Made by a program: the position numbers and the translations under genes | NCBI GenBank assembly: GCA_965644295.1 | Contig: CBFFRP010000280.1 | Coordinates: 166,399-230,398, forward strand | Length of the DNA stretch: 64,000 nt | Reading direction: 5' to 3' | Source: Paraphysomonas bandaiensis | Lineage: Eukaryota > Protista > Chrysophyceae | The notes under the pieces: generated by a model | What the model was told of the DNA's origin: nothing | The model's input: the letters and a program-made list of their open reading frames with translations, nothing else | Database searches by the model: none | Shown: one piece after another, positions 8,219-43,300 of the stretch | Numbering within the stretch: position 1 is the stretch's first letter | Layout: each line of letters begins with the position of its first letter

Positions 8219-11200
8219 ATGCAGCAGAGTCACCTGGATAGTTGTGCAGTGGCTCATATCCCTCAGTCTCCTGGATACTTTAAAGCAGAGGTATTTGAAT
8301 GGCAACGGTTCGTTCCTCTATATAGATGGAGGTTTTTCAAGTACACGAACACGGCGGGTGTGACCCTCCACGAGACAGACCTGAGTAACACATCTCCTCC
8401 ACGAGATATGATGTGGGCGTCAGAGTGGAGACAGACAGCACAGAAGAGTGATGAGGGTGATGGATGGTCGTATATTGCTACTCTAGAGCAACCTGTGGAA
8501 GCTGGAAAGCGTTTTTCGCTGCCTCATCGCAGGGGTTATCGAAAGCGACTCTGGACTCGCTTAATTCGATTTTCGAGTGTGATATCATCGGCAGCCGAGG
8601 TATTCTAGCGTGATACTATATGTATCAAATATTTATTTTGATGTATAAATAATATATCGACAGAAACAAAGTATACCCGAGATTCCTTCGCCTTATACGT
8701 TTCACATTCGCAACTCGCGTGACCAAAAACTGAAAGGCGGCACAGCTATTTCACATCCGGAATCGCCGGAAATAATTTATGCTGTAGTTTATGAAAATCA
8801 ACGCCTTGGGCGGGAAGGTAGCGACTTGATATGGAGTGCCCGTTTTCTATCTGGGAATGATTGGCCTGCGTTTTCCAATGAATCTGGGACACACAAGGTA
8901 TGCTCTGCTCACTCGCCACAGTTTGATCGTTAGATATAATTTTATATGACTACAGCTACCCTCACTCAGTGAGGTTGCGGTCCAGTGGGGATACGTGTGG
9001 GATGAGCCGTGGGTAGTGGAGCAGTTGAAAGGGCGGACTGACTCAAAGGGATTTTTTTATGCCCAGAGCTTTGCTGAGATGCCGAGGGCGATGACAGAGT
9101 TGGGGACGATAAAATCTAAAACGTCTGTCTGGTGCCGTTCCAGAAAATGGCGTCGGCGAATGACGGTACTCGTTATTGTCTGTTGCAGTGATTCTGAAAT
9201 GTGTTGCCTACAAGGAGTATTAAGTCTTGTGGCATTTTTACAATACGCTTAAAGTGAGTACTAATATTTGTTGTTTTATTGCTCTTCGCAGAGGCTTCGA
9301 ATTGCCGAAGAAAAAGAAATTGCAGTAGCAGGATCTCTTGGGCCTCCTCCCTTTACGTTGATTATTCGATTATTGCGTATATCTGATACAGAGCTCTCAG
9401 ATGGAGTTAAAGTTGAGATATCCGTAGGAAATTCCATCGTCGGCATCACAGATGGGAGTGAGGATTGTGCATGGAAGAATCAGGGCGAATTTTCTGTGGC
9501 ATTAACATCGCTTGTACCAGTGAGTCTACGATTTACTGTGACGCAAGAAAGTTACAAAAACAGGCATCGATCAGGGCTCATTGGGCGCGCCGTAGACGAT
9601 AACCTCATGTACAATAAGTTGTGGACATGTGTCAACAGGTTTTATTTTGACGCTATATTGCATTCTTAACATGTGATATCAGGAAGGTTACCGTACGCCT
9701 TCCCATCTACCCTGAAAGTAATTTACGATCATCTGGTATTCTGGAGGTGGAGTTGGAGCTAAACGAGCGGTATTTATTTTATCTATCGTCGTCAACTGAT
9801 GCATTATCCACTGCTATCACTCATTTCCCTGAAATCGATCAATCTCCCCAAGACTACCTCGCCAGATTATTAAGTCAGTACTGTAAACATTTAGAATTTT
9901 TTCGAAAATATCCTGATAATGTATCATCTTGGATGAGAAGCCTAATACCACGTGCAGACGGAACGCCATTCCTTATGGCGACGTCTAGGTCTGACCTAGC
10001 TGATATATTTTCTCCCTCTCTGTATACAGATGTACATGACTTTGTATACCATCTTTTTCCGCTCTCTACGTTGGTGGTGAAGGAATCACTACTACAACTA
10101 ACAGAATTCGGTCTTTGCTCTGCTGATAATGAATTATGCGAGAACCGTGGTCTACAAGTACCAGTCTACCGCAGCTTATTTCATATTGCTCGCAGAGTTG
10201 AAGCAATTGACAGTGATAGTAGCCTGCAGTGGACATCAACGCTTGTTACTCAAGACAAACTGTCTCACACGTTTTGCTGGGATAATGAGTATGGATATTT
10301 GCGGTGGATGCGATTTATCGGAAACTCGTTACGCACACACACCGTAGATGTGGAAATAAGTTGCATGAAACTGAATTCAGAATTCGAACGTAAACCAGTA
10401 ATTCTGTGCTGCCGGGCAGCAGACGATGATTATACGGTGTCCTGGCGTGAATGTAAAACAGAAAATAATACTGGATCAGTTTCACGCTGCTACAGTGTCT
10501 CAGATATCCGATTGGTTAAATCAAGTTTAGACTATGAATACTTGACAACGTATGCTCTAGATGTCGACGTTACTTCGTTTGCCGTTTTAGAAGCTCCTCC
10601 GGGCGCAACTGTGATGATTACGTTACTATCACCGAATGGGCAAAGCCAACGTTTGTGCACCAGAAGTACTCATTCGCACGAAATGCCCAGTGCATACGAC
10701 GATAATGTTGGAAATGTGCGATTTTTTCTATCACCGGGTGATGTATGCGACGGTGACATCATAGCCTCTATCCATATTTGTTACAGTAGTAATATTGCTA
10801 TGCCCCATACAATTGGGGAACTTCGTGTTCCCATTCGCGAACTTGTACGAAATAGCCTTTTTGGATCTGATTGCTCCGATGCACCAAAGAAAGAAGCACA
10901 ATCTCAACCTGAAAAGTCCCAGCGATCAGGCTTTGATGACTCTCAACTGAGTTTGAATGTGCCAACTTACCACCACTATAGCTTAAGTCCTCCACGACAT
11001 GCTATTAGGTATGACGCTATTATGCTTTCATGACCTCACGCGTGTATCAGTTTTACGTTCGTGAAGGGAGAAAGATTGCTTGGAGTAAACTTGGATAAAA
11101 CATCGGATCCGTACTGCATTCTTCAGTTTACAGATTATATCGGAAATCCAGTATCTCAGAGAACATTCAAAACGAAAAGTATAGAAAGAAATTTGAATCC

Positions 11201-23853: not shown

Positions 23854-25443
23854 ATGAAAGCAAGTGGGAAGAAAGCAGAAATTCAAGTGATTGATGACAA
23901 ACTATTAGTGGAAGGAATCACAGTAAAGAAAACAGAATCAGGTGAAAGAAGAGGTGAACTCACACTAGTTGACATGTGTCCGATTGCGTCATCATTAGTG
24001 CTGTCGTTTAAAAGTATCGGAAGGATTGAAAACTTGGTTGGATTGGAGAGTCTCGTCAAACTCTGTTTAGATAACAACCAAATCAAAGAAATCATTAATC
24101 TTGAACACCTTGTCAACTTACGTTGGCTTGATTTGTCTTTTAATAATATTCAGAAAATTCAGGGATTAAAAACATTGAAACACTTAGAGGATTTGTCGCT
24201 GTACAGTAATAAAGTGTCCGTAATCGAGGGCTTGGAACAGTGTACCTCATTGCAGTGTCTATCTCTTGGTAACAACAAAATTGACTCTTTGGATCAAGTG
24301 ATGAGATTACGCCAACTTAGGAGTCTTCGGATGCTTACCCTAGCTGGAAATCCGATATGCGAGGAGTCGGAGTATAAGATGATTGTCCTTGCATATGTAG
24401 ATGCACTGAACTACTTGGACTACGCACTTGTGGGCAGCGCTGATATTAGCAATGCCAAGGAACAATATCATGATGATTTGCTTGATGTAGAAGAAAAAGA
24501 ATCAGTCGTAGCCGAAAAGTCTTCGCGAGACAAGGCAATGACCGACTTTCTCAAGCAGCTCGATGAGGCCGGAATTATATTTGCACATGTGTTATTTGAT
24601 GATATGTTCCTTGACGATCCAGACTTGGAAAAGCTTAAGCACTTGCCTGGAGCCAAAGAGCTTGTAGAAGTGTTCCGTACATCATTTAAGGCTCTTTCAG
24701 ATGAATTTATTCGTGGTGCCATGGAGAAATACGAAAAGAAGAAGAAAGAAGTCCGTGACTTTGAATCCGTGATTGAAGGAGTTCGCAAACGAGATGACGC
24801 AGAAAGCATTCATCTCATAGAGAACTTCAACAAATCGAAAAAGCAGGCTATTGCCAATTTGCATAAGACCGATGGTGACAAGCAAGAGGTGATGAAACAG
24901 TTGCAGGCGGAGCTTGAACGGGTGGCTGACGAACTTATGAGCATTGAAATCCGGCAAGTTGAAAAGTTTGAAGCACTCGTGGATGAGTTTGATAACCGGA
25001 TGAATGATCTCAAAAATCAATGCTTGGAAGCACAACAATTGTTTTTCAGAGCTGTGGAAGAGCTGGAGGATAAATTTTCGACCAATGTGAGGGCTGTAGC
25101 GACTGACCTGATTGACCGCCTAACTAAGGAAGAGTTGGCGGAGGATTATCTTGACGACGAAGCTATGGCTCTGGTTGTGGACAAAGATGCCAGCATGGGA
25201 ACACTCTCAGGATCTCATGATATGCACATCGGAAAAATTCTTAAGCGCGAAGACGAAGCACGCGCCACAGAAACGAGAAGATATCAGGAGCTCATATCAT
25301 CTTTCACCACGAATGAAAAGGCTCGTAATCGAGACCGGATTCTACAAATTCACGATTTCTCTAAGAACGCTACTGCTTCATTAAACAAAATTCTGGCACT
25401 AGAGGAGGAAGATGGTTACGATGATGAACCATCTGTATTTTAA
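23854..25443 (+). CDS. DRC3: Dynein regulatory complex subunit 3 (LRRC48)
   Basis: SDS22-like LRRs (LSFKSIGRIENL, LCLDNNQI, WLDLSFNNI), LAGNPIC and a long helical C-terminus with SHDMHIGKI..REDE and RNRDRI..I. The 529-aa length is typical. Confidence 0.9.
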   Translation: MKASGKKAEIQVIDDKLLVEGITVKKTESGERRGELTLVDMCPIASSLVLSFKSIGRIENLVGLESLVKLCLDNNQIKEIINLEHLVNLRWLDLSFNNIQKIQGLKTLKHLEDLSLYSNKVSVIEGLEQCTSLQCLSLGNNKIDSLDQVMRLRQLRSLRMLTLAGNPICEESEYKMIVLAYVDALNYLDYALVGSADISNAKEQYHDDLLDVEEKESVVAEKSSRDKAMTDFLKQLDEAGIIFAHVLFDDMFLDDPDLEKLKHLPGAKELVEVFRTSFKALSDEFIRGAMEKYEKKKKEVRDFESVIEGVRKRDDAESIHLIENFNKSKKQAIANLHKTDGDKQEVMKQLQAELERVADELMSIEIRQVEKFEALVDEFDNRMNDLKNQCLEAQQLFFRAVEELEDKFSTNVRAVATDLIDRLTKEELAEDYLDDEAMALVVDKDASMGTLSGSHDMHIGKILKREDEARATETRRYQELISSFTTNEKARNRDRILQIHDFSKNATASLNKILALEEEDGYDDEPSVF

Positions 25444-26707: not shown

Positions 26708-29700
26708 TCAAAAAAGGCCCACTTCTCGCTTCTTGGTAAGCTGTTTCCATTTCGGCAGAGCAGCAAACTCAAGTTTCGTAACACCCATTACACGTAGAAA
26801 TTCAGCATCACTTAGGTAGCTTTCCTTCTTTCCCATGTCGATATTCTGTACTAGATTGTCTCGAAGAGCGTCATATGAATAACAGTTAGAATATGAAACG
26901 GTTGCTGTGAGTGCATCAGTGGCCCTCGCCTTCTCAAAGTTAGCGGATCGCGACTTCACAAGAAGCGAACGCCTGTCAACCGAACCGTGAGATATCGATT
27001 CCGACCCGACAGAAGCAGGTTTATCGGTAGCACTTGAAGTATCTCTTTCGAAATACGCCGATCTGCTGCGCACAAAACCGAAGCGTTGCTCCGCCATACC
27101 AGAGGAGGATGGTATCGGTGCGGACTGACGCCTATCTTTATCTCCAATGGTGCGGGCGTTATCATTTCTTTCTGCTGCGTGTTCAAGTTTCGACTGTTCC
27201 TCCCCTACGTTTGAACGGCTTGCACGTTTAGCGCCATTCAGAGGTACACCATTCACAGGGACAGATGATGTAACAGGTGCCATGCTCACCCGTTGTAAAC
27301 TTATACTAACCTCAGGAAGTTCACCATGACCAGAGCCAGATCGTTCAAAACGGGCAGATCGCGATTTTATGAACTCGGAGCGTTTGTTCAATGAAGAAGG
27401 CGCTGATACCCTGCGATTATCACCTTGAGGAAGGTTGGTATGCATCTGGCTAGAGGATGCATCAGCCACAGGATGGACACCAGAAGTGCTCAACTTTTTT
27501 CGTTCAAACTTTTCAGATTGTTGCTGGACAAATCCTCCGCGAGAAACAACTTGCGGTTTGTGTGCACGTTCTACGTCAGGCAACTTAGGATTTTCTTCCG
27601 AGTTTCGGTGAAGCCTATCGGATAGTTCAATGTCATCTGGAGAAGGCCCATGCTGACCGGGAATAACCAGTTCCTTATCGTTTGAAGTAGAAATACTAGT
27701 CTCCTCTGAGTGTTCTAATTTCGCTGCTTGCTCCAAGTCTGGACTTGAGCGGCTTGTGGGTTGAGGTATTGCACTATGCTCCGCATCCAGTGATGATTCC
27801 TGTCTCAGTTCAAACTTTTCAGATTGTTGCTGGACAAATCCTCCGCGAGAAACAACTTGCGGTTTGTGTGCACGTTCTACGTCAGGCAACTTAGGATTTT
27901 CTTCCGAGTTTTGGTGAAGCCTATCGGATAGTTCAATGTCATCTGGAGAAGGCCCATGCTGACCGGGAATAACCAGTTCCTTATCGTTTGAAGTAGAAAT
28001 ACTAGTCTCCTCTGAGTGTTCTAATTTCGCTGCTTGCTCCAAGTCTGGACTTGAGCGGCTTGTGGGTTGAGGTATTGCACTATGCTCCGCATCCAGTGAT
28101 GATTCCTGTTTCAGTTCAAACTTTTCAGATTGTTGCTGGACAAATCCTCCGCGAGAAATAACTTGTGGTTCGTGTGCACGTTCTACGTCAGGCAACTTAG
28201 GATTTTCTTCCGAGTTTTGGTGAAGCCTATCGGATAGTTCAATGTCATCTGGAGAAGGCCCATGCTGACTGGGGATAACCAGTTCCTTATCGTTTGAAGT
28301 AGAAATTTTAGTCTCCTCTGAGTGTTCTAATTTCGCTGCTTGCTCCAAGTCTGGACTTGAGCGGCTTGCGGGTTGAGGTATTGCACTCTGCACCGCATCC
28401 AGTGATGATTCATTTGTCACATGTACTGGAGAGTCAGGTCCTTTCACAGGTACACCATTCACAGGGACAGATGATGTAACAGGTGCCATGCTCACCCGTT
28501 GTAAACTTATACTAACCTCAGGAAGTTCACCATGACCAGAGCCAGATCGTTCAAAACGGGCAGATCGCGATTTTATGAACTCGGAGCGTTTGTTCAATGA
28601 AGAAGGCGCTGATACCCTGCGATTATCACCTTGAGGAAGGTTGGTATGCATCTGGCTAGAGGATGCATCAGCCACAGGATGGACACCAGAAGTGCTCAAC
28701 TTTTTTCGTTCAAACTTTTCAGATTGTTGCTTGACAAACCCTCCGCGACGACCAACCGTGGAACGTTTTGACTCGTCCAGAACAACTGAACTTTCAGTGG
28801 CTACGTGACTGAGTATATAGTCTTCGCCGGATATTTTATCACTTGGTTCAACAACCGAAGGAGTGAATTCATTCGGTCCGACGGACTCCGGGGTATCGTT
28901 TCCGTGGCGGTCTACTACTGGGAGGCTAATTTCGGTCTCTTTTATATTTTGGGTGACAAGCGATGTGACATGCGAGCTCGGAGTTTCGAGTGCTTCGTTA
29001 GCAACCTGAAATTTCAATAATAACTACATTACCAACGGTTGGTTATACATTGCAATTAGCATACAAAGACGTATTCACTACCGGCTTCGCATCATCAATT
29101 AGAGACTCTTCGTGGTAGTCGCCAGAAATAGACGGTGGAACGACGTCAAGAGTGAAAGAACTGTGATCCACTGGGCAGCGCTTTTCCTGTGACGCGGTCA
29201 AATGGAGATAGTGAATGAAATATGTTCAAATAGAGGAATTCTCATACCTTCAGTAAAAGCTCTTCCACACGTGCCTGCTGCTTGTTCGATTCTCTCGTTA
29301 ACTTTGAAATCTGAGTTTCATACTTCCTCACTTTGGCCTCTAATTCCGCAAACTCGGACTTCGATATACTACTCTGCGGAAGCCTGGGAATGGTATCATC
29401 ATTTTTTTCTCGTACCGTTATTTCAGGACTCTCAGACAAAGTTAATGAGAGTTCCCCAACAGAATCATCCCAGCGTCGCACTTTATCCACTGTGCCAGTT
29501 GGATGAGGGGAAAAAATGTCGCTGAGGCGAAGATAGTCAGTACTACCCCAGCAATCAACCTGATACCGCCCCGACTCAATCATACTCCGCAACTGACGCA
29601 CTGCACTCAGACGAGTCATATTATTATGCTGCACCAAAATCGAAACTAGTGTCTCAAACACACACTCCACAGTCGTATTGCCCCCACTGACATACACCGA

Positions 29701-32700
29701 ACATGAGGAGTCTGACAATAGTTTTACAATATTTTCCCCAGCTAACTCCATCTTATCCACAATGTAAGACCGCGGTGGTAATGCAATGTGTACCTCAGAG
29801 AGGGCTCCCTCCTCAAGCCACAAGTTAAGCTCCTCTCCATACATCACCGAATTAGTGGAGAGAAACCCTGTGAAAACCAGGGCTGGACCAATGGGGCTCA
29901 CTGTGTCATCTTCAGGTATATATTGACAACGTTCCTCACAGAAAGCTGTCATTGGAGCGAGAGCAATCCCTCCGCCGATCATAAGCAGCGGTGCCTGCGG
30001 GTTCGCACATAATCTAAACGTCGACTTGCTTAGCGCCACCAATGCGCTGTCTCCAGCTGCCATATCGTTCAGCATAGCCGAAGCGTGTCCATACCGCTTC
30101 TGAGAGAATGCTGATGGTATAGAAACTAGACTCGCACATATGTACGCTTCATATGGGTGCACCAATGCCGAAGAAGCTATTGAATAATATCTCGGCTTAA
30201 GTGGACGAACAATTTGTAGCAGGTCTATGATAGTAATTGAACAGGTGGACGAGAACCTCTGAAGCATTGCCGAGATAGTGTAGTGCTCATCAATGATTTT
30301 ATTCATGAGTCTGTTGTACTTCTCTTTGTCGTCAGCATATTCTGCAAGTGTTTCGATCCACTCCTGTAACACAAAAAAATTGATGGATGTTTCATCCAAA
30401 CATTTATCTGCTAGTAAAGATATCAGTTTACTACAGACATCTGGTGTGAGTCGTATGTCTATATGAAATCGCAAAATATCACCAACTCTCGCTGGAAGCG
30501 GGACAAATAAAGACGCAGGCACTCGCTCCTGCCGTGATGGAATTACGTCCCAACCCATAACAACATCATCTAACTTCAAACCCAGGGAACTAGCGAGATT
30601 CTCGCATGCATTCACTGAATTTAATGGTAATACACAGAGTCTATCGCCAGTCTCGTAGCTGTCAGTCAACGGGGACACATCAAAGGCCACAACTCTTGCC
30701 GATAATGTTTCGCTTGACTTGAGCATGAGTTGATTGGATATTACACATTCACAACGAGTGAACCGTCCGAGCTTAGCCGGCACCCCATTCATATCAGTGT
30801 CGTAATTTCGTAGTTCAGTCACGCGATGGTCATTCGGCGGGACAACTTCACATTCTAGTCTTGGAATTGGTTCATCACTGCCTAAGAGTGACGTACTTAC
30901 TCTTGCTAACCATTCCTGTCATGACATATGTTATACTTAGCACTAGCACTAACGCTACAACACTATACCTCAAACGCACCATATTGGTTATTCAATTCGT
31001 CAGCTTTCATCGCAGCAAATAAACGATTTCCACCAGCATTAAGTAGAGCTTTATCCACTTCATGGCCATATCCACAGAAAATAGGAAACGCAGAGCATCC
31101 GACCAATAACACACTGAACGATGTGTGATTCAGGTCAGGTAAAGAACCATCACCATCCAAGAAACCGTGAGCATTGTATGGGCACTGTTTATGGTCTAAT
31201 GACGACGTGATGACGAGGATTGTGGAAAAAGTGGAAAGAGAAAGTCGTTTATCACGTGTGCCAAACTCTGACAAACGCGCTAGTGTTGGATGTAGTGAAC
31301 GTAGCTTCCTGACTGTGTGCTTCGCGTATACTTCACAGGTACCAGTTTCCGACCCATAGAGTACTATAACACCCCCACGCGGCATGTCCAATTCTAACAT
31401 CTCGCCTTTACCAGATTCAAGTGTGACTTTAACTGCCCATATGTCAGATTGACTGCGAAAGCGAGGAAACAATGGGAGCTGACGCATTTCGCGAGTCCAT
31501 AGTGGGCACTGCATACCTACGAAGCCTTTGAAATACAAGTGAGCTATTCGGTGACCACGAAATTTATAGAATTATACCTCCAATCCAATTCCACTCACCA
31601 GAGACTTCCCGCCCCTGCTTCTTTTCATTATTACAATGAGTAATAAATTCCGATGATGCTGTGTGATGGGTAGTGATCGGTACGCCGGATTTAATGTACG
31701 ATCGCGAAACTGCTGTGCTCAGAAGAGCAAAGCCGATTTCCTGCCAGTTTGATATATCGTCCCGTGTATTCAGGTCAAAGGATTCTGCAATCTCGAATTG
31801 GTTTTCAAGCTTCTCCCATAGGTACCTTGCTACCTCAAACTCAACGAAACCACGGCTAAATACACAACAGTTGTATTCCACACCACCTATCTCCATAGCG
31901 CGATTTGAAGAGGATAAAAGAGTGGCACAACGAAGGGCGAGGGCATTGAACTTCTCATTAGCGGGATGGGTAATCTGTACATCATATTGAGCTTTCATGG
32001 GTAGTTCGTAAAGTCTTGGAGGAGCACCATCCACCTCGACCACCAGAGGTAATATATCCCATGCAGTCCTCGGCTCAGGCGGATTCCACCCAAGTTTATC
32101 TATCATCATCTGGGTTAAGTGTTTGTTACCAGGATCCCCAAGATAAGTCCCGTCGGGCATTTCATAGCATGCGTACGACACAAGTGAGTTGTTCCATATA
32201 CGTATGCCCCATACTTCATTTGGACGACGGGGTCGGAATACTGTCATAGAGCAGATTTTATCGCTCTTCCTAGCTATGGCTGTGTCCAGATGATTCACAC
32301 ACACTCGAAATATCTCCTCAGGAGAGCAAATGTGTCGCCGATCTCGTACAGTAAGTGAGTCCCAATGCAACCTTCCAATGCATTTCGATGAGTTCCGCCA
32401 CGCCACCTAAAATACAGCATGAAGGGTGTCGTCGTGAAAATACCCACAACATACCCGGCAGCCATACTGAAGCTCTTCGTATGTATGGGTATAGGTCCCT
32501 GTAGCTGCAATCTCGGCTTCCACCTGGCGTAAAACAGTCAACGCATGTGTACGGCTTCATGTAAAAAAATACCTGAGATATTCGAGCTGTCAATTGGTCT
32601 TCTGGCCATCTCTGTTCCTTGGCTAGCAGTAGAAACCACTCCCGTGCCTTCATCAGCAACACTTCCCGCACCACAATCGGCTGCTTCACATGCAGTACCA

Positions 32701-33653
32701 ACAAATCAGCTAATCTCGTCAAGCCTGAACGAAGTTCGGTTGACACAGACTCTCCTGTTTTCTGAAGTGCAGTCAAGAGAGCCTCCGGGAGGTACGAAAA
32801 AGTTTCTATTGGAAATGTATACTCAGAACATATCTTTGCAAGGGGTTTGAAAGACATAGCGAGAGAACCAATTCCTGTTCCTTTCTCCAACCCTCGCACG
32901 ACGTTATTCAAAGTCTCTCCGACTGCTAGGGCGAGGTCGTCTACACTGGTGCTAGCTAAACATACTCTCAGCGTGTTGGAGCGCGCAAGGAGAACTTGAC
33001 AAACGACCTGTCCCACCTTGTCCATCCCCCCATTGGACAACACAGACGACAAGTGACGAGGTAGATGCTTTCGCATTAGAGACGAAGTGAAATATTCTTT
33101 CCTCGAAGCTATGGCTTTTTTTGCTTTGTTTTGGATGTGCAAAACAAAAAACCTCCACACAGCGCTAGAAACTGGGTCACTTTCAGCAGCTATTAAATCA
33201 TCAATTTCCTCTTCATTGAGATATAATGAATAGCATCCCAGACCAAAAAAAAATGCCTTGCGGAGGTGGGTCCATTGACGTGAGTCAATGCCAATATCAG
33301 CATAGTACGACATATATTCCTCTACTGTAGAGTACCTGCACCCTGGATTAGGTTGAGTGGATTCTGTACTCATATTCAGCGCTCGAACAGCAAGATCAAT
33401 AGTGAAAAATATATCTTCCCTCAAAGTCTCATGAAAGGCATATATCTGATACACACACACATACTATTACACTCATATACAATAAATATACATATAAACT
33501 ACATACCGTCTGTTGAACACTAGGACATGTTGCCATCCAACGATGATATATCGCCTCCATACACTGATCTTTCCACACCAGACTCTTGTTCCATATCTCC
33601 TTGACGGTCACGATATCCTCCTCACTGAGGATGGGGACATTATCTTTTGGCAT
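26708..33653 (-). CDS. Globin-coupled nitric oxide synthase-like protein fused to a villin headpiece (8 exons, 2181 aa)
   Basis: Exons are 33653-33507, 33445-32573, 32523-32455, 32406-31578, 31525-30969, 30915-29248, 29186-29082 and 29005-26708. All introns are GT..AG, 48-76 bp, and the frame is preserved (6546 nt). Motifs: [31 protein letters not shown] (NOS heme-thiolate), VLYGSETGT (FMN), PRYYSIASS (FAD) and YLSDAEF..VMG....F..LPKWKQ..KKREVGLF (villin headpiece). Confidence 0.88.
27242..28747 (-). repeat. Coding repeat array: three ~306-bp tandem units flanked by a ~300-bp direct duplication
   Basis: gttcaaacttttcagattg recurs at 27502, 27808 and 28114 (period 306). Blocks ~27242-27545 and ~28449-28747 are near identical. 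Confidence 0.95.
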
Positions 33654-34246
33654 GATACAGTCGTAGGTCCCAGATAATTATGTTCTCTTACACTAACTAA
33701 TAGACAGTCCACCTCAAGGAGGTGTTCTTAATATCTATGATATGAAATTGTGATACTTAAACTCTTCGTATGATTAACGCACACAAGATTGTACATATAC
33801 ACCATACTTCGCTCGTATACACTTCACACTGCACCCTGTACAGCAATATCCAGATATTGGATCTAGAAATAGGTGTTTTTTAGTAAACTGCGTGAAATAC
33901 TGGATATTTACAATACTATACCTCCAATTTTATCTTACAATATTCTAGAATTATGGGCATCCAGACATCACACAGAGCCATATGGTGTTTGATTGTATAT
34001 GGTATTGCAGTGGACCCTCATCATATACAGTACAACAGCACACATATACACCTACAGTGTGGTACAGTATGGCCAAAATCTCAATTCTATTCTGGACACA
34101 AGTCACTCTTGCCATATCCATTACATTGGACAGTCCTTGCACCAGCTAAGCCTTATCCAACACCATCATTATATATATTACTATGTTTATATCTATCCAT
34201 ACTAGAGCCAATACATAGCACCTTACCAACATATATATATATATAG

Positions 34247-35425
34247 ATGTCATCCGTGTGTTCAGATATCTCTAAAAGCGAATATGCTTTTAACATGCTA
34301 ACTGAAGAAGTGGATGAATACTTAGACCATTGCGGTCCTTGGGTTGAGGATTACAGACACGGTTATAGCGAATTAGTTAGAAAAAAACGTATGGTCGCAG
34401 TGCCTCATGTTGCTGGAATCTCTGATCGTATAGTGGGTATTGCCACTGTTTTTCTTTTGGCAATTGTATCAGATCGTGCATTTCAGATTGGACACATGCC
34501 TGAGTTGATTCGCTTCGAAACAGTGTTTCAAATTCCTCATGCCAATATCAGTAGAATATCAGGGGACATGCCAATTATTGAAAGAAGACTACGTGAGGAC
34601 AAATCGAAGAAAGTAGCAACGAGTCATACATATTTGGATCCTCCTGGATATTTTTTAGTTAATTCAATAAGCGATGGTCAATACCCATTGACTAAAACAT
34701 TTTTTGAATATGCGGTTGATAGCTCATTATCTGATGTAATGGTTTCCACTAACAGGGGACGAACCATTAAAATGTTCGACATTACCCACCTTAAGAAACC
34801 TCTTCGTAAAATGGGACTGCAATCAAGGACAGCTTTTGGTTGTGCTATCAACTTTTTGTTTAAACCAAAACCGGAGGCATTCGTTGGCCTGACGAATACT
34901 CTAGTCAAAATGGCTGACAAGCACACAATAAAAATTGCGATCCATATACGGACGGATGATAGAGTATTGATTAAAGGTGATGCAATTGACTTCTCAAAAT
35001 ATGAAAGTTATTTTGAGTGTGCTCGACGTATTGAGAGTTGGGCTGGCTCCACTGGTCGAAATATTGTGTGGTTTCTTTTCTCGGATTCCATAGAGATTAG
35101 ACGTGCTGCACAGAAGAGGTACGGTATCAACAAACTCATTACTGCCGTAGATGTGCCGATTGAGCACACCGCAAAGGAGATGGTGTGCCCACTTAAGCGG
35201 TGCGTGAGTGATGAGGGGTTCAGTGTTGCTGCCGCGGAATGGTGGTTAATGGGACATGCTGACTACTTTGTTGTCGGACTCAACTCTGGGTATGGTAAAA
35301 CTGCCGCAATGCGAACAGCTAAGTTAAATAAAACATATACTATTTATGGTCATCAAAGAAATATGTGCGATGACAATGATTATGCAAGGCTTAGACTTGT
35401 TAAAGAGGCGTATGCTGGAATATGA
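34247..35425 (+). CDS. GDP-fucose-type glycosyltransferase (alpha-1,2/1,6/O-fucosyltransferase superfamily); 5' exon may start near 33953
   Basis: Motifs AGISDR, IAIHIRTDD, WFLFSDS and AAAEWWLMGHADYFV...SGYGKTAA match the three conserved FucT motifs. Confidence 0.75.
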   Translation: MSSVCSDISKSEYAFNMLTEEVDEYLDHCGPWVEDYRHGYSELVRKKRMVAVPHVAGISDRIVGIATVFLLAIVSDRAFQIGHMPELIRFETVFQIPHANISRISGDMPIIERRLREDKSKKVATSHTYLDPPGYFLVNSISDGQYPLTKTFFEYAVDSSLSDVMVSTNRGRTIKMFDITHLKKPLRKMGLQSRTAFGCAINFLFKPKPEAFVGLTNTLVKMADKHTIKIAIHIRTDDRVLIKGDAIDFSKYESYFECARRIESWAGSTGRNIVWFLFSDSIEIRRAAQKRYGINKLITAVDVPIEHTAKEMVCPLKRCVSDEGFSVAAAEWWLMGHADYFVVGLNSGYGKTAAMRTAKLNKTYTIYGHQRNMCDDNDYARLRLVKEAYAGI

Positions 35426-36747
35426 ATTATGCTCTCTGACTATGTGTGTCAGGATTTGTCCAATATATATATAACGTGGAACTGCATGAACAATATATGT
35501 AAATATAATTAAGCTAAATCAAGGGCCCCGTTATACAACTGTTAATGAAATAGAGCACTTTAATTGAGGAGTACCTTAATCAGTTGTGCTTAGCGCACAC
35601 CAGAACAACATTCCGTTGAGTGAACAAATAGCAATCTATCGACAATTATACGCCTTTCAGTGAAGATAAATATGGAAATTAAATTTACTTTAATATTAAT
35701 GTTCAGCTATTACTGATATCTACTTTTTCTATAGGGAAAGAAAAGCTAACTTATGTAGATGGTCGATGTGATAAGTGGCAAAGTAAACTTCCTACTTGAT
35801 GCTTGAATCTTGAATCAGTAGTTTAGGCGCAAGAAAAAAGTTTTTTCGATAGATAATTAGTTGCAACCAGAAAGAAATTGGTTTTAAATTGATTTTAACA
35901 ATCTATGAAAGAAAGGGTGTAAGAGTAGAACATGTTGACTATTGCCTACCATAACAACATAAGAGTTATGTATGCCGCGTCAAAAAGGCGATACAGTCAA
36001 CTCGACGAATATAGTAGTCAACTTTGAATACATTTAATATATGTGCACGAATGACACTCGTAATACGATATTGCATCTGGAAAGATGATAGAGTAAAAAG
36101 TAATCTGCAAGGCAGGTAAAGGAACGAGGGAAGGGGGAGGGCGTTCCTTACTTCCCAACCCCACAAGGGGGCCTCTCCTTGATGATTTATCAATATACCG
36201 ACGGGGTGTGTATGTAAAAAATGTCACCCAGTTTATCACGCAAACAATGATTAACAGGTCCTAATGACTTTGTAATTGATTTACAATATTTATATAGCAT
36301 TAAAGAGTGAACATTATGTATGTACTTTAGTAGTCGTAAATATTTCCAAGTTATTTTCTATTGATATAGGTATCAAGAATCTAGGCTACATTCCTGCTGC
36401 AGAGATTAGTAGTTCCCTAGCTCTTCTCCAAAATATTACGATCTTCGCAATATGAATATGTTCTTTTATAAACAGGTGAAACAGTTTGACGTTGAACTCG
36501 ATTATTTTATGTGTCTTGTTGCTCAGTGACCCCGCTAAAATCTAAAATGTAATGCAAGCAAGGTACTAGAGAGTATTCGAGTTCTTATACCCTTCAGATT
36601 ATAGATGTCAAATCAGTAACACTATACTTCTGTATAGTTTACGACAAGTAATACAGAGAATGCAGAAAGTAGTAACCATAGACGGCACTTTGATTACACA
36701 GTTCAATATACAACAATATACAATACACTATGCACAGTGACATGCGC

Positions 36748-37177
36748 TCACAGACCGAGCTCCCGTTCTCGGATTCTGAGTTTAACCCACAAGGGGTCTT
36801 CAAAAGGTGTAGCATGATATCCTTTATTTACAGGTTGTAGCTTCACAAGGATTCTCTTACATCTCAGTGGCTTCGGGGGTCGCACTCTATTTACTCGTGT
36901 CCATGGATCATTTTCTCCATGAAGTCCGTTTAACCGGACAGGTGTATCATCATTTTGCCGAAGTGACAGAGTAACAGAGTTAATCGGAGTCAAGTATTTA
37001 TGCATAGGGCGCCGCTTATAACGAGGGGCATGTCTCACAACAGGAGCTGGAGACGAGAGCTCCAAGTGCAGTTTCGGGGGATCTAATGGGGAAAGCAATC
37101 GAGATCCCTCTGTACTGGACACATCTGTGTCACACCAAGTAGAGGAGTCGTCAGAATACTTCGATTTGTTGGGCATA
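36748..37177 (-). CDS. Hypothetical small basic protein
   Basis: ORF of ~140 aa with coding-like composition between AT-rich spacers; no recognisable domain. Confidence 0.45.
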
Positions 37178-37714: not shown

Positions 37715-39169
37715 ATGGAATCAGCTTTATCACAGCTGAAAGAAGCTGCATCAAACGACAATACACATCAAGTACGATCTCTAATAGAGGAGTATGGAGG
37801 TGATATGGTGCATAGTGCCCTCACTGATCAAGGTACATGACTGCATATATGTTGTTTCCTATATAACACATATTAGGCTCTACTGTGCTAATGGTATCAT
37901 GTGCTACGGGTTCGATGGGTGTTGTGAATTATCTTGTCAATGACTGTTGCACTGATGTCAATAAGGAGAACAGTAACGGAACCACAGCACTAGTTTTTGC
38001 ATGCAATTCCGGAAATTTAGACGCTGTGCGATGTCTTTGCGAACATGGGGCAGAAGTAAATCATCGTATTCATAGTGGAGATACCCCGCTAACTGTTGCA
38101 GCTGACGTGGGATTCACGGACATTGTTGAGTTTTTATGTCATTCTAAAGATCTGGAGATCGAGGGGCAGAATAATGAGGGCAGAAATGCACTGCACTGTG
38201 CAAGTACGGAGGGACATGTGGCTGTGGTATCTACCCTTCTGACGCATGGGGCCAATGTAGATGCCCTTGTTGGCTCGAGCTCAACGTCTGAAGACACGGT
38301 GCCAGTGCAACAGATGTGTACACCTCTAGTCCTTGCATGTATGCATGGTAACTCAGAGGTAGTATCTGTGCTCCTCGCTCATGGGGCGGACTACTCACTT
38401 ATAAGCGATTATATCATATGTCGGGCACACGCCGTGGAACATGAACGTGATAACGATATAAGCGCTGTAAAAGATACTATCTGCAGTATGCTTCGGAGAC
38501 AGGGGTGGCTCCCCAGACTTGATCTCAGACGGTGCTGTGAAACGGATGACCAGTCGCGCCTGCTGGAATTGCTTCAGAAACACCCAGGAAGTGCTGAAGT
38601 TTTGTTGTCTGAAGCTCTAGCAGGTGGTGGAGCCACAGGTCTTATGGTAGCTTGTCTGCATGGGGCGGAGTCTGTCGTACGAACCCTTCTCTCATTAGCT
38701 TCAGAGGCGCCCTACCAACACCGCAAACACACTACTAAGGTACATCGCTGACTACAGTTTTATGTCTTTATATATATTTATAATTCATGAACTTATGTAC
38801 CGTGTCCGTGTTATCGTTTTACATATTTATCTGGCATTGGACTCGTAGGTACGCAGTGGAGACGGAAGGACGGCTCTGTCCTACGCTGCCTGGGGAGGAA
38901 AAGCGGAAATAATAGAACTACTTGCACCTCACATTGCCAGTGGAGAACTGAACGTGAATGACAGAAATGACGAAGGGAAGAGTGCACTATACTTTGCTTG
39001 TTTGAATGGGCATCATGACGCTGTAAGTAGGCTGTTGAAATATGGGGCCACCTGTGACGACATCTCGGAAGATGATATCTGTAAGAATCTGTATTTAGTC
39101 AATTCTGAATCACTTGACAAGTTGAATGAGAGAAAAGCGGTAATATTAGATGCTCTTGGGTTTTGTTAA
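37715..39169 (+). CDS. Ankyrin repeat protein (2 introns)
   Basis: Repeats GTTALVFAC, GDTPLTVAA, GRNALHCAS, TPLVLAC, GRTALSYAA and GKSALYFAC. ATG at 37715; introns ~37832-37877 and ~38740-38848. Confidence 0.88.
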
Positions 39170-40054
39170 TGTATAAATAGTGTATCATTGACGATTTTGT
39201 TTATGCTCCGTCGATCCGTCGTCACTCGTCCGTTTTGAGTATTGGAGTTCATCTTGTCTGAAAAGTCGGTGTGATCGTGAAACCTGGTAAAGTGATTTCA
39301 CCAGGTTTCATATATGGAAAAGTGTCTTATATGTACTTATTTGAAGACTAGGGTTAATGTTAATTGCAATTTAGTTGTTGAATATTTTCAATTATATATA
39401 TTTTAAAAATACTTTACTAAAATATTGTATTAATTATAGTGTTACTTTTCATATAAATCTACTGTAATAATACTTATGAGAATCTCACATCAACGTAACT
39501 ATATATTATACACATACAACACATGATTAGACACTATATTACTTTAAATATATTACTATAAATGAAACACATTGTAGTTTCTAGCTACTTACGGCAGGTT
39601 AAAAGCTTACGTGAAATGCCTTTGAAGCACTAAGCTTTCGTAGTAACAGTCCTTTCTTCTGCATCATGTAATATACGCAGTCAATCATTCTGATATTGTA
39701 TTGTATATTGTAGACATAGACATATATTGAAGTGCAGTGTATGAGATCGTGTATCGTGATACATACCAGCAGCAGGTTTGGGCTCAGAGCAAAGATTAAT
39801 CGGTATTGGCTAGAGAAATAAAAAAGTGTTCTGTTATTTATATGTCAGTTATTGTTCTGATTTTAGTGTTAATGTATGGTTTACAGTCATGATATTTATT
39901 TTTGCAATACTAGTGTTGGTACTAGTTTTCGCAATACCATTTAATACAATTGTGTCCGGTTTTTGTTTCCTAATGATAAATGTTAGCAATGTACACAAAA
40001 GGGTAGGAAATGTCTGTTTATTGTTTATTTAGCAACAGACATTCAAGAGTCAGA

Positions 40055-40303: not shown

Positions 40304-43300
40304 TTATAACAACTGCGAAGTAGCAAATTCACGAGCTAGTTTCGCTATATCATCAGTATTGTCTACACCTTTGACGCTTCCCTGAGCAGCATCCGCTTTC
40401 CCTCCGCCCTTACCACCAAAGGGTCCTATGATATGTTTAATCCATTCCACAGCGTGTAATCTAGAGCTATTCGATTGCTGTGGTACACTTGCAGTGCATA
40501 AGATCCTTGAGCGTGCCCTAATTACGAGTACATAGGGTACTCCCGGACAGTTTTTGGCTATTTCTGTGTGAACTAATTTAACTACACTAGAGTCACTAAA
40601 TTCTTCTCCTGATAAGACAAAGACACCATACTTTGATCCAGCACACTTCCCTGCCTGTATCCCAATTTCTCCTATCACTTTCTCGGTGTCTTTCAATTGC
40701 GCCGCTTTTCGAGCTTTCTGTAATTGTTTTTGCATGCCTTCTAACGCAGCACGAATGTCATTCTTTACCAATACAGATATCACTGAAGACTCCATATCAG
40801 AGCTCAGCTGAACAACTTTATTCCTCAAATTATCCAGCTCTAGCACTGTTTGTGGAAGATCAGATGCTTGTACACTCCGCATTCGATCCAACAGCTCAAC
40901 AGCTCTGAGCCTAGCACACTTTGCAGAATCACCGGTAAGTGCTGCAATCCGTCGTACTCCCTTAGAAACAGCACTCTCCTCCGTCAACACAAAATCCTCC
41001 AACTGAGACGAACTACTCACATGATTTCCCCCGCAAAACTCGATAGAGCAATCCATCCACTTAGGGGAAGCGGGGTCATCAATAACGGCATCGACACTTG
41101 CGCCCACAGAGACAACTCGCACAGGATCTGGGTATGACTCACCCGCAACTGTGCGCAGACCATTGATCTGAACCGCGACACCTTTAGGCACCAATTTTGT
41201 GTCCACCTCCAGACCTTGCTGAATAAACTCATTCATTTGATATTCAACAGCTGCCAGCTGTGCATTGGTCAGTGCATGCGAGCTGGAGAAATCGAATCGC
41301 AACTTATCCTCAGATACCAGTGACCCCCGCTGTTCCACACTCGGTGCCACTACTTTCCTCAAAACATGATTCAATATATGAGTTGCAGTATGGTTGGGAA
41401 CTATTCGTTTCTTTCTCTCATTATCTACGACGGCAATTACAGATGACCCCACGGTAAGACACCATGAACGTACTTTGACAGAGTCAGGGAGGCAGCACGT
41501 GTGCAGAACATAGGAGCCGAATGACTGGACATCTGTTACTGGGAGTAAAATGAACTCACCACTCTCAGCAGCGACTTTTATGTAACCGGTATCACAAACT
41601 TGACCGCCAGACTCAGCGTAAAACGGGGTTTTGTCTAAAATAATACCACATCTCTTGCTGCTTATATTGGAATTAAGGATACCAGCGTCAATTCTTTCTA
41701 TGAGCTCATTACTGTCCGACAAAATGGCTCGCACATTGCAATTCAGATTGTTGGCAAACACATCTACATTGGTTTGAGTGTAGTTGTACTTATAAGAATC
41801 GTCCGTGGGAAGTACATCATTGCTCTTCAGGTCAGCTAAAAGATGAACTGAAAGTTGAAGGGGCTGACCATCACTACTCCTATCACCACGAGCTGAAATT
41901 TTGCTCTTTTCGCGCTGCAAATTCATTTCATTTTCATATCCCGCCATGTCTACCTCAAATCCTTTCTCGGCAGCTATCAAGCGAGTCAAATCGACAGGAA
42001 AACCCATCGTATCATACAAATAGAACACATCGCGTCCAGATATGAGAGCAGGCTGGTCTCTGGCCGTTTGTTCGCCCATACGCTCTTCTAAATACTTCAT
42101 TCCACGAGGGAGCACAGACGCAAATGACGTCTCTTCTTCAGCAATAGTGGAACATATCAGCGCTTCTTTATCGTGAAGTTCGGGGTATGCTGAACCAAGC
42201 ACACGGACGACCACTGGAACAAGACTTGATAATGTACCTGGAGGAGCATCCAAGACCATGCAATACCTATCACGCAATTGAAAAATTAAAAAAGGGAACG
42301 TGGTGAGCACAACATAGCCGGATAAAACTCATGTAGATAACCCATCTCAAATCAAAAGCTATATCTAAATTCATTTGGTCACATGTTTCCAATAATTGCA
42401 CACGTATCTATTTCAATGGAAGTCCCACAAAAGTAATTTTAACCACGTTGATGCTCTCAACCTACCTTAAGGCACGTCTAAGTATACGTCGTATAACATA
42501 TCCTCTTTTTTCACTTGATGGCACTACTCCATCCGCAATAGCTACACACAATGCCCTCATGTGATCAGCTACCACTCTGTACGCCATATCTCTACACCCC
42601 GCGTCGTCTGTCCCTGTTTTGCCCATGTACGGTATACAGTCAGGCCCAATTAACCTTGCTAGTTCATCAAATATAGGATAAAAGACATCAGTGTCGTAAT
42701 TAGAATTTTTATCTTGTAGGATAGAGGTAAGTCGTTCGAGCCCCATACCAGTATCCACATGAGCAGCCGGAAGCTTCTTGAGGTACACCTTACCACTTTC
42801 TTCGTCTTTCTCCCGATGATATTGCATGAACACCAAATTCCATATCTCTAATACAGTAGGATCATCGCAATTAACTAGTACTGCTGCATTTCGATTTCCA
42901 ATACGATCATAATGAATTTCAGAACACGGTCCACATGGACCGATGTCTCCCATCTCCCAAAAATTTTCCTTGGCTCCAAAAGGTAGCACACGGCTTGCTG
43001 GTAAATAATTTAACCAATAATCCCTTGCTTCAGTATCACATGGAACGCCCATTGCATCATCTCCCGCAAAATAAGTCACATACATGCGTTCTTTGTCTAG
43101 GTGATACTTGTTTACGAGCAAGTCATAAGCCCAGTCTATCGCTTCTTTTTTAAAGTAACACCCGAATGACCACGTGCCCAACATCTCAAAGAATGTATGA
43201 TGATAAGTATCCTTACCCACATCCTCAAGATCATTATGCTTCCCACCAGCACGAATGCATTTCTGACTATTGACAGCACGACGAACATCATTTAGAGGGG

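Follow-up and report, generated by a model that had tools for sequence, protein, structure and literature searches.

In a 64,000-nucleotide stretch of DNA from Paraphysomonas bandaiensis (Chrysophyceae; assembly GCA_965644295.1, contig CBFFRP010000280.1, positions 166,399 to 230,398 of the forward strand; this whole stretch is called the window and is numbered from its first letter), we found a minus-strand gene in which the body of a nitric oxide synthase (NOS) is continued into a long tail that ends in a villin headpiece. The gene is real, it is expressed as one spliced mRNA joining body and tail, and its combination of domains was found nowhere else. The body belongs to the family of syNOS, the NOS of Synechococcus sp. 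PCC 7335, and several of its conserved motifs are replaced. We therefore favour, at somewhat better than an even chance, a dimeric NOS-derived heme/flavin protein that is tethered to actin by two headpieces and in which canonical NOS catalysis is impaired.

Gene model and reading frame

The gene runs from 33653 to 26708. Its eight exons and the domains that they encode are listed below from the 5' end.

33507..33653, minus strand: exon 1, 49 codons, ATG at 33653; pseudoglobin start with the helix A/B motif VKEIWNK..WKD, homologous to the N-termini of NOS relatives
32573..33445, minus strand: exon 2; pseudoglobin remainder, then globin-fold domain
33086..33445, minus strand: pseudoglobin remainder (first ~120 codons of exon 2), equivalent to syNOS 179-339
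32573..33085, minus strand: globin-fold domain and helix into the oxygenase (last ~170 codons of exon 2), equivalent to syNOS 340-473
32455..32523, minus strand: exon 3, 23 codons; N-terminal piece of the NOS oxygenase (NO_synthase profile positions 35-56)
31578..32406, minus strand: exon 4, with a split codon; NOS oxygenase core (profile positions 57-329)
30969..31525, minus strand: exon 5; C-terminal hairpin of the oxygenase and flavodoxin domain for flavin mononucleotide (FMN), the latter at about 30984-31364
29248..30915, minus strand: exon 6; reductase for flavin adenine dinucleotide (FAD) and reduced nicotinamide adenine dinucleotide phosphate (NADPH), then a helical extension; ends at the donor AAG/GT
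29539..30915, minus strand: reductase (exon 6, codons 1-459), FAD_binding_1, syNOS 1045-1443
29248..29538, minus strand: C-terminal-tail helix with a conserved Trp and a heptad-rich helical stretch (last 97 codons of exon 6); the aligned tails of relatives end here
29082..29186, minus strand: exon 7, 35 codons; bridging exon without an ATG
26708..29005, minus strand: exon 8; low-complexity tail, headpiece and stop codon (26708-26710)
26912..29005, minus strand: low-complexity Ser/Glu/Pro-rich tail in exon 8, about 700 residues, without a Pfam family
26711..26911, minus strand: complete HP67-like villin headpiece, 67 residues; Pfam VHP (PF02209) core at 26711-26818

The seven introns measure 61, 49, 48, 52, 53, 61 and 76 bp in 5' to 3' order, and all seven are bounded by GT..AG. 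Joined, the exons form a frame of 6546 nt, i.e. 2181 codons and a stop, with no internal stop. An earlier interpretation made from the letters alone (the sequence-only reading) had proposed this model of eight exons, seven introns of 48-76 bp and one 2181-residue frame, and all of its borders were found in the sequence. It had also taken the end of the reductase open reading frame (ORF) for a splice donor and the start of the headpiece ORF for an acceptor. This agrees with the TGA at 29244-29242, which lies inside intron 6, two codons past the donor, and with the absence of an ATG from exon 7 and from the first ~117 codons of exon 8 on reading the sequence. The genome (62.6 Mb, 669 contigs) has a single NOS locus, which is this gene.

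Transcripts and splicing

Among 20 public runs listed, 18 carry the stretch wholly or partly, and marine metatranscriptomes are among them. The contigs of four runs (X1, X4, X5 and X16) were compared over 28420-34250; contigs of this kind cannot reveal transcript ends or rare isoforms. We observed that run X1 holds one 4651-nt contig, extending from 33752 to 28702, from which all the seven introns are removed. Run X4, which has a different organism label and comes from a different study, holds a 1244-nt contig with the joints 29247/29185 and 29080/29003, and intron 1 is also removed in this run. In X5, labelled as a seawater metatranscriptome, intron 5 is spliced out. X16, with 96% of the sampled words and the behaviour of genomic DNA, gave one collinear contig with no joints.

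At introns 6 and 7, bin depth was 68.5 and 95.6 as against 126 in X1, and 5.43 and 7.58 as against 9.99 in X4. As these values equal those predicted for zero intron coverage, introns 6 and 7 are not retained in the contigs of these two runs. The RNA check that the sequence-only reading had proposed, splicing from the reductase to exon 7 and from exon 7 to the headpiece exon, was thus answered in its favour by both joints in X1 and X4. The case that it had named as contrary, transcripts ending at the TGA at 29242, was not seen, all X1 and X4 contigs at this place being spliced. These data confirm one gene with one spliced, expressed mRNA that joins the NOS body and the tail.

The contig of X1 breaks at 28702 because of the repeats in the tail (described below), and loose ends in RNA-type runs lead on to the repeat copies that lie downstream, near 27.5 and 27.2 kb. 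Transcription through the last 1.7 kb, the headpiece included, rests on these loose ends into the repeats and on the unbroken 766-codon frame.

Domains of the body

Profile and structure searches were made exon by exon. Pfam recognised NO_synthase (PF02898; E 4e-75), Flavodoxin_1 (E 1.6e-11), FAD_binding_1 (E 5.9e-18) and VHP (E 6.4e-15), while Globin gave no match in the exons and NAD_binding_1 stayed below threshold (E 0.12, 13.5 bits against a cut-off of 22). The forecast of the sequence-only reading held for the first four families and failed, at Pfam thresholds, for the last two. The closest solved relative of every body part was syNOS (PDB 9q05), in keeping with the kinship proposed earlier. 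The oxygenase corresponds to syNOS 531-806 (E 1.5e-67), the hairpin and flavodoxin to 812-993, the FNR part to 1045-1443 (E 1.4e-40) and exon 2 to 255-500 (E 1.3e-7). The domains of syNOS are a C2 (1-134), a heme-free pseudoglobin (179-339), an NO-dioxygenase globin (340-473), the oxygenase, the flavodoxin and an FNR with a regulatory C-terminal tail (PMC12922734).

A model of exon 2 (39 relatives) reached a pLDDT of 91 and a TM of 0.77 to the syNOS chains, and its TMt against single globins, neuroglobin included, was 0.68-0.78. The globin-fold part of this exon could also be aligned with P0003, a NOS of Phalansterium, in its Pfam Globin region. In these models a pseudoglobin fold and a globin fold precede the oxygenase. 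The two tandem globins claimed from the letters are therefore supported as folds by homology and modelling, but the first of them is the heme-free pseudoglobin of the syNOS type (PMC12922734). Pfam, syNOS homology and the models together support the order that had been read originally: globin-like, globin-like, NOS oxygenase, diflavin reductase, villin headpiece.

The order of the body is the same as in syNOS (PDB 9q05/9q06; PMC6104048, PMC12922734), i.e. pseudoglobin, globin, oxygenase, flavodoxin and FNR with a C-terminal tail helix, and the calmodulin-binding insert is absent from both proteins. The window protein differs in having no N-terminal C2, in a Cys in place of the proximal His, in the replacement of the arginine-pocket, FMN-loop and NADPH motifs, and in about 900 additional C-terminal residues with the villin headpiece at their end. 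No C2 domain was found in it: the protein begins at the pseudoglobin, and in-frame stops lie close upstream of the ATG at 33653, inside the transcribed leader. Removal of C2 abolishes the NOS activity of syNOS (PMC12922734). The extension at the end of exon 6 gave only weak matches to coiled-coil families (Pfam, E up to 10), which are at chance level.

Villin headpiece and tail

The VHP profile is covered in full (36/36) at the extreme C-terminus, where GLF is followed by the stop. The invariant residues L, P, W, K, L and F of the headpiece are all present, and the motifs read LPKWKQ, KKRE and GLF. We take the cap Trp, the adjacent Lys, the KK patch and the C-terminal L-F to be F-actin-binding residues, as in villin. 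The headpiece model matched villin HP67 with a TMt of 0.77-0.80 and a root-mean-square deviation of 2.0 A, at about 40% identity over 63 columns, and the headpieces of dematin and abLIM also matched. From this likeness we infer that the headpiece would tie the protein to actin filaments. A prediction of the complex between the headpiece and an actin from this genome scored 0.01, which weighs neither way. Conventional intronless actin genes are present on contig C132 at 9879-10997 (+) and 38218-39336 (-), in opposite orientation and about 27 kb apart, and a partial third copy lies at 36430-36948 of this contig.

The last 76 residues of exon 8 matched only one gelsolin-VHP protein and two TPR-VHP proteins, and an ESM Atlas search for relatives of the tail returned only generic VHP clusters at 0.75. 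Four VHP loci are present in the genome. In the lineage of this gene the headpiece appears to recombine freely, as a module placed at C-termini. The genome also encodes a TPR-repeat protein with a C-terminal villin headpiece that is split by an intron (L007 1057-1674); TPR-VHP relatives of 555 residues (P0269 and P0270) occur elsewhere, and L004 and L005 are short or disordered proteins with C-terminal headpieces. No gelsolin domain was detected by Pfam in any of the eight exons.

The tail upstream of the headpiece contains eight copies of the basic motif [RK]..F[VI]..[QR]S..FE and three RRxS sites. Inside exon 8, a 306-bp unit is repeated three times in tandem (27502-28411; identity 98%), and this array is flanked by two 282-bp copies (28448-28729 and 27242-27523) with 0 differences in 261 nt compared. 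Both types of duplication junction appear as loose ends in DNA-type as well as in RNA-type runs, which indicates that the duplication is real and very recent. Differences between the array units are nonsynonymous and synonymous in the ratios 9:2, 12:2 and 5:0. The repeats of this tail of about 700 residues are fast-evolving and probably disordered. The tail and exon 7 gave only chance-level Pfam matches (E up to 10), and no homologue of exon 8 was found at E <= 0.001 among 8000 scored candidates. Exon 7 (29082-29186) encodes the sequence KRCPVDH, which contains a Cys-Pro dipeptide.

This C-terminal arrangement resembles that of dematin, abLIM and supervillin, in which an HP67-type headpiece also follows a long low-complexity stretch with nearby RRxS sites. 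Unlike villin, dematin and abLIM, the window protein has no gelsolin repeats, LIM domains or dematin core, and its N-terminal part is the NOS body.

The fusion among NOS relatives

About 270 NOS relatives were compared overall; records of this genome itself and orthologues from sister species lay outside the set. Similarity to exons 7 and 8 was found in none (0/150) of the nearest NOS cluster representatives, and Pfam scans of the nearest long NOS representatives returned no VHP. PF02209 was likewise absent from the Pfam lists of the best 120 of 348 syNOS-like proteins (866-2756 residues), and a full-text literature search for a NOS with a villin headpiece or VHP found nothing relevant. The statement of the sequence-only reading that no such NOS is known therefore stands, both for the about 270 relatives and for the literature.

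The closest full-length relative, P0155, comes from a transcript-type contig and is 33-46% identical to exons 2-6. Its complete ORF stops 75 residues past the reductase and has no tail. The contigs of the closest relatives of the oxygenase, P0001 and P0002, end before any tail position, and a metagenome scan with the oxygenase alignment gave four loci, all distant (33-38% identity); no close relative whose downstream flank could be read was among them. Eukaryotic syNOS-like NOSs (P0155; by source name, P0003 of Phalansterium, P0007 of a chytrid and the diplonemid P0017/P0154; and the diatom PmNOS, discussed below) have the same C2-less body of five domains. These relatives have neither tail nor VHP and retain the canonical motifs, whereas the window protein differs on both counts.

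Extra domains are present elsewhere in the family: globin, protoglobin and EF-hand extras occur among the best 120 of the 348 syNOS-like proteins. As the family gathers accessory sensor modules, the addition of a headpiece is less isolated as a phenomenon. The extras in proteins P0176, P0251, P0172 and P0183 are EF-hand domains, PF18599 or a protoglobin domain.

Cyanobacterial-type NOS genes have been reported in diatoms, PmNOS of Pseudo-nitzschia multistriata among them (Di Dato et al. 2015, PMC4648414). Identity of the window gene with PmNOS was considered and rejected. Each of the two published RT-PCR (reverse transcription polymerase chain reaction) primers differs from the spliced mRNA at 7 or more positions, neither of them is found within the window, and the forward primer is absent from the genome as well. 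The primer mismatches mean that the window gene is a different gene or comes from a different species.

Replacement of conserved residues in the body

Degeneration was counted at alignment columns in which conservation reached 90% or more among 140-258 relatives. The window protein deviates at 33 of 121 such positions, distributed as follows.

oxygenase: 10 of 48 positions deviate (family median 1; P0155, 2)
flavodoxin: 6 of 27 positions deviate (family median 1; P0155, 1)
reductase: 17 of 46 positions deviate (family median 0; P0155, 5)

In the arginine pocket we observed W160C, P164L, N184S and G185R, by which the W..P and FNGW motifs are replaced. A Trp column of the pocket reads Gly and an Asp/Asn column reads Tyr; the relatives shown retain the canonical residues. 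The FMN loop TSTFG.G is changed to SSLDHKQ (in the context TSSLDHKQCP; T108S/G112K), and its stacking Tyr is Phe. At the NADPH site the changes are T317I, G318A, R352L, S380P, R381P, C410S and D412G, so that the GTG motif, the Arg of GCR, the Ser-Arg pair and CGD are replaced and D.W alone is retained. The proximal-His column of the globin reads Cys; several relatives likewise have no His there.

Since residues conserved in the family are replaced at these sites of arginine, FMN and NADPH binding, the body probably no longer works as a standard NADPH- and arginine-dependent NO synthase, and the canonical chemistry from NADPH to arginine is, on these alignments, probably lost or strongly altered. 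The earlier description of the protein as an NO/heme/redox enzyme has thus become doubtful, because the window protein alone has these three sites replaced, and because its proximal His is Cys.

P0001, a protein on an ENA metagenome contig (L002 6001-7122) and the closest relative of the oxygenase at 49% identity, has the heme-ligand Cys changed to Ser (WRNSVKSIGR). A further eukaryotic NOS-like gene may thus have lost catalysis by another route.

Genomic surroundings

The neighbouring ORFs encode an LRR protein (23854-25443, plus strand), an ankyrin-repeat protein (37885-38751, plus strand) and the C-terminal part of an alanyl-tRNA synthetase (40304-42310, minus strand). We regard all three as unrelated, no connection with the NOS gene being evident.

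Discussion

In the mechanism that we propose, one expressed gene of a silicifying marine protist would give rise to a 2181-residue product with a syNOS-family body and no C2. Splicing extends this body, right behind the regulatory C-terminal tail of the reductase, into the helical stretch, the repeats and finally the headpiece, by which the protein would be anchored on actin filaments. As NOS bodies dimerise, two headpieces would extend on long tethers from each dimer, which could also bridge filaments. The body would more likely serve as a heme/flavin-binding sensor or scaffold, or carry out an altered chemistry, on the actin cytoskeleton. The sequence-only reading had placed the protein at a feeding cup, phagosome or flagellar root; this siting was judged unfitting on the premise that the host was most likely a diatom and so would have no feeding cup, a premise drawn from 15 silicon-transporter matches in the genome.

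Several observations weigh against this proposal. Key residues of the enzyme are kept, namely the heme-thiolate Cys (motif WRN..C(I/V)GR, here KCIGR), the substrate Glu of the oxygenase, the pterin Trp pair (GEWNWIG, aligned with QWSWI / DWVWI), GSETG in the FMN domain (GSETGT), RxYS at the FAD site (PRYYSIASS; RYYSIAS) and the C-terminal aromatic residue (terminal D.W). Together with an intact and expressed 6.5-kb frame with seven introns, these motifs mean that some redox activity may survive. The mostly nonsynonymous differences between the array units point to a tail that is young and weakly constrained. The comparison of transcript contigs reached down to 28420, short of the last 1.7 kb.

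The kept residues would also suit a fully active NO synthase, perhaps with NO-dioxygenase chemistry in its globin, which the headpiece positions on actin to give local NO signals. In its favour, an intact gene is transcribed and spliced, both in cultures and in a metatranscriptome from seawater, cyanobacterial-type NOS genes are reported in diatoms (PMC4648414), and mammalian eNOS and nNOS are regulated through actin-linked complexes. We nevertheless find an active synthase unlikely, as the 33 changes cluster in the arginine pocket, the FMN loop and the NADPH 2'-phosphate/hydride site, which the closest relative keeps, NAD_binding_1 falls under its cut-off and the proximal His of the globin is Cys. 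The absence of C2, without which syNOS loses NOS activity (PMC12922734), counts in the same direction, yet the eukaryotic relatives are also C2-less. Less probable again is an active heme-flavin body, of altered substrate or nucleotide preference, whose electron flow is gated by actin binding or tension at the two headpieces to produce a cytoskeleton-gated NO or redox signal. Such gating is conceivable because the tail adjoins the C-terminal regulatory helix of the reductase, which in syNOS locks the FMN domain; we give it a small chance.

The degraded catalytic motifs could instead mark a decaying NOS gene that recently, and in this lineage only, captured the exons of a neighbouring disordered VHP gene and is now transcribed and spliced without a selected function. 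The tail is found in no relative, P0155 stopping soon after the reductase; its repeats, 98-100% identical, differ mostly by nonsynonymous changes; between strains there are 3 nonsynonymous changes and 1 synonymous change, numbers too small for a test; and stand-alone disordered VHP genes also exist in the genome. However, 2181 codons run over eight exons with no stop or frameshift, every splice site is used and there are no retained-intron contigs. The headpiece has all its invariant residues and a confident HP67 fold, and the pseudoglobin-globin part is modelled at high confidence, all of which makes a functionless fusion rather improbable. The arrangement could also yield two products, mainly a tail-less NOS that retains intron 6 and stops at 29242, and a separate VHP protein from exon 8, with the joined mRNA as a minor read-through. 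The stop codon two codons inside intron 6 would allow it, and contigs are blind to transcript ends and rare isoforms; against this, the depths over introns 6 and 7 match zero coverage in X1 and X4, where only spliced contigs occur, and neither exon 7 nor the beginning of exon 8 offers an ATG. We regard two products as very improbable indeed.

The actin-tethered, catalytically impaired dimer would link the NOS family to the cytoskeleton directly within one protein, where adaptor proteins are needed elsewhere. Mammalian nNOS is attached through a PDZ domain to the syntrophin/dystrophin complex, eNOS associates with actin, and both are regulated via actin-linked complexes. Their placement at cortical actin is due to partner proteins or non-covalent contacts, whereas the window protein has an actin-binding module in its own chain and an enzyme part of degenerate appearance.

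Which enzyme produces NO in diatoms is still debated, and diatom NOS genes are patchy. Given the degraded catalytic motifs described here, the presence of a "NOS gene" does not by itself make this host an NO producer. If actin did gate the body, a diatom cell would have a cytoskeleton-gated signal, for example during valve formation, wounding or grazing. If the body is active, the protein would be the first filament-tethered NOS; if it is inactive, it would clearly exemplify how a large redox enzyme became a pseudoenzyme of the cytoskeleton.

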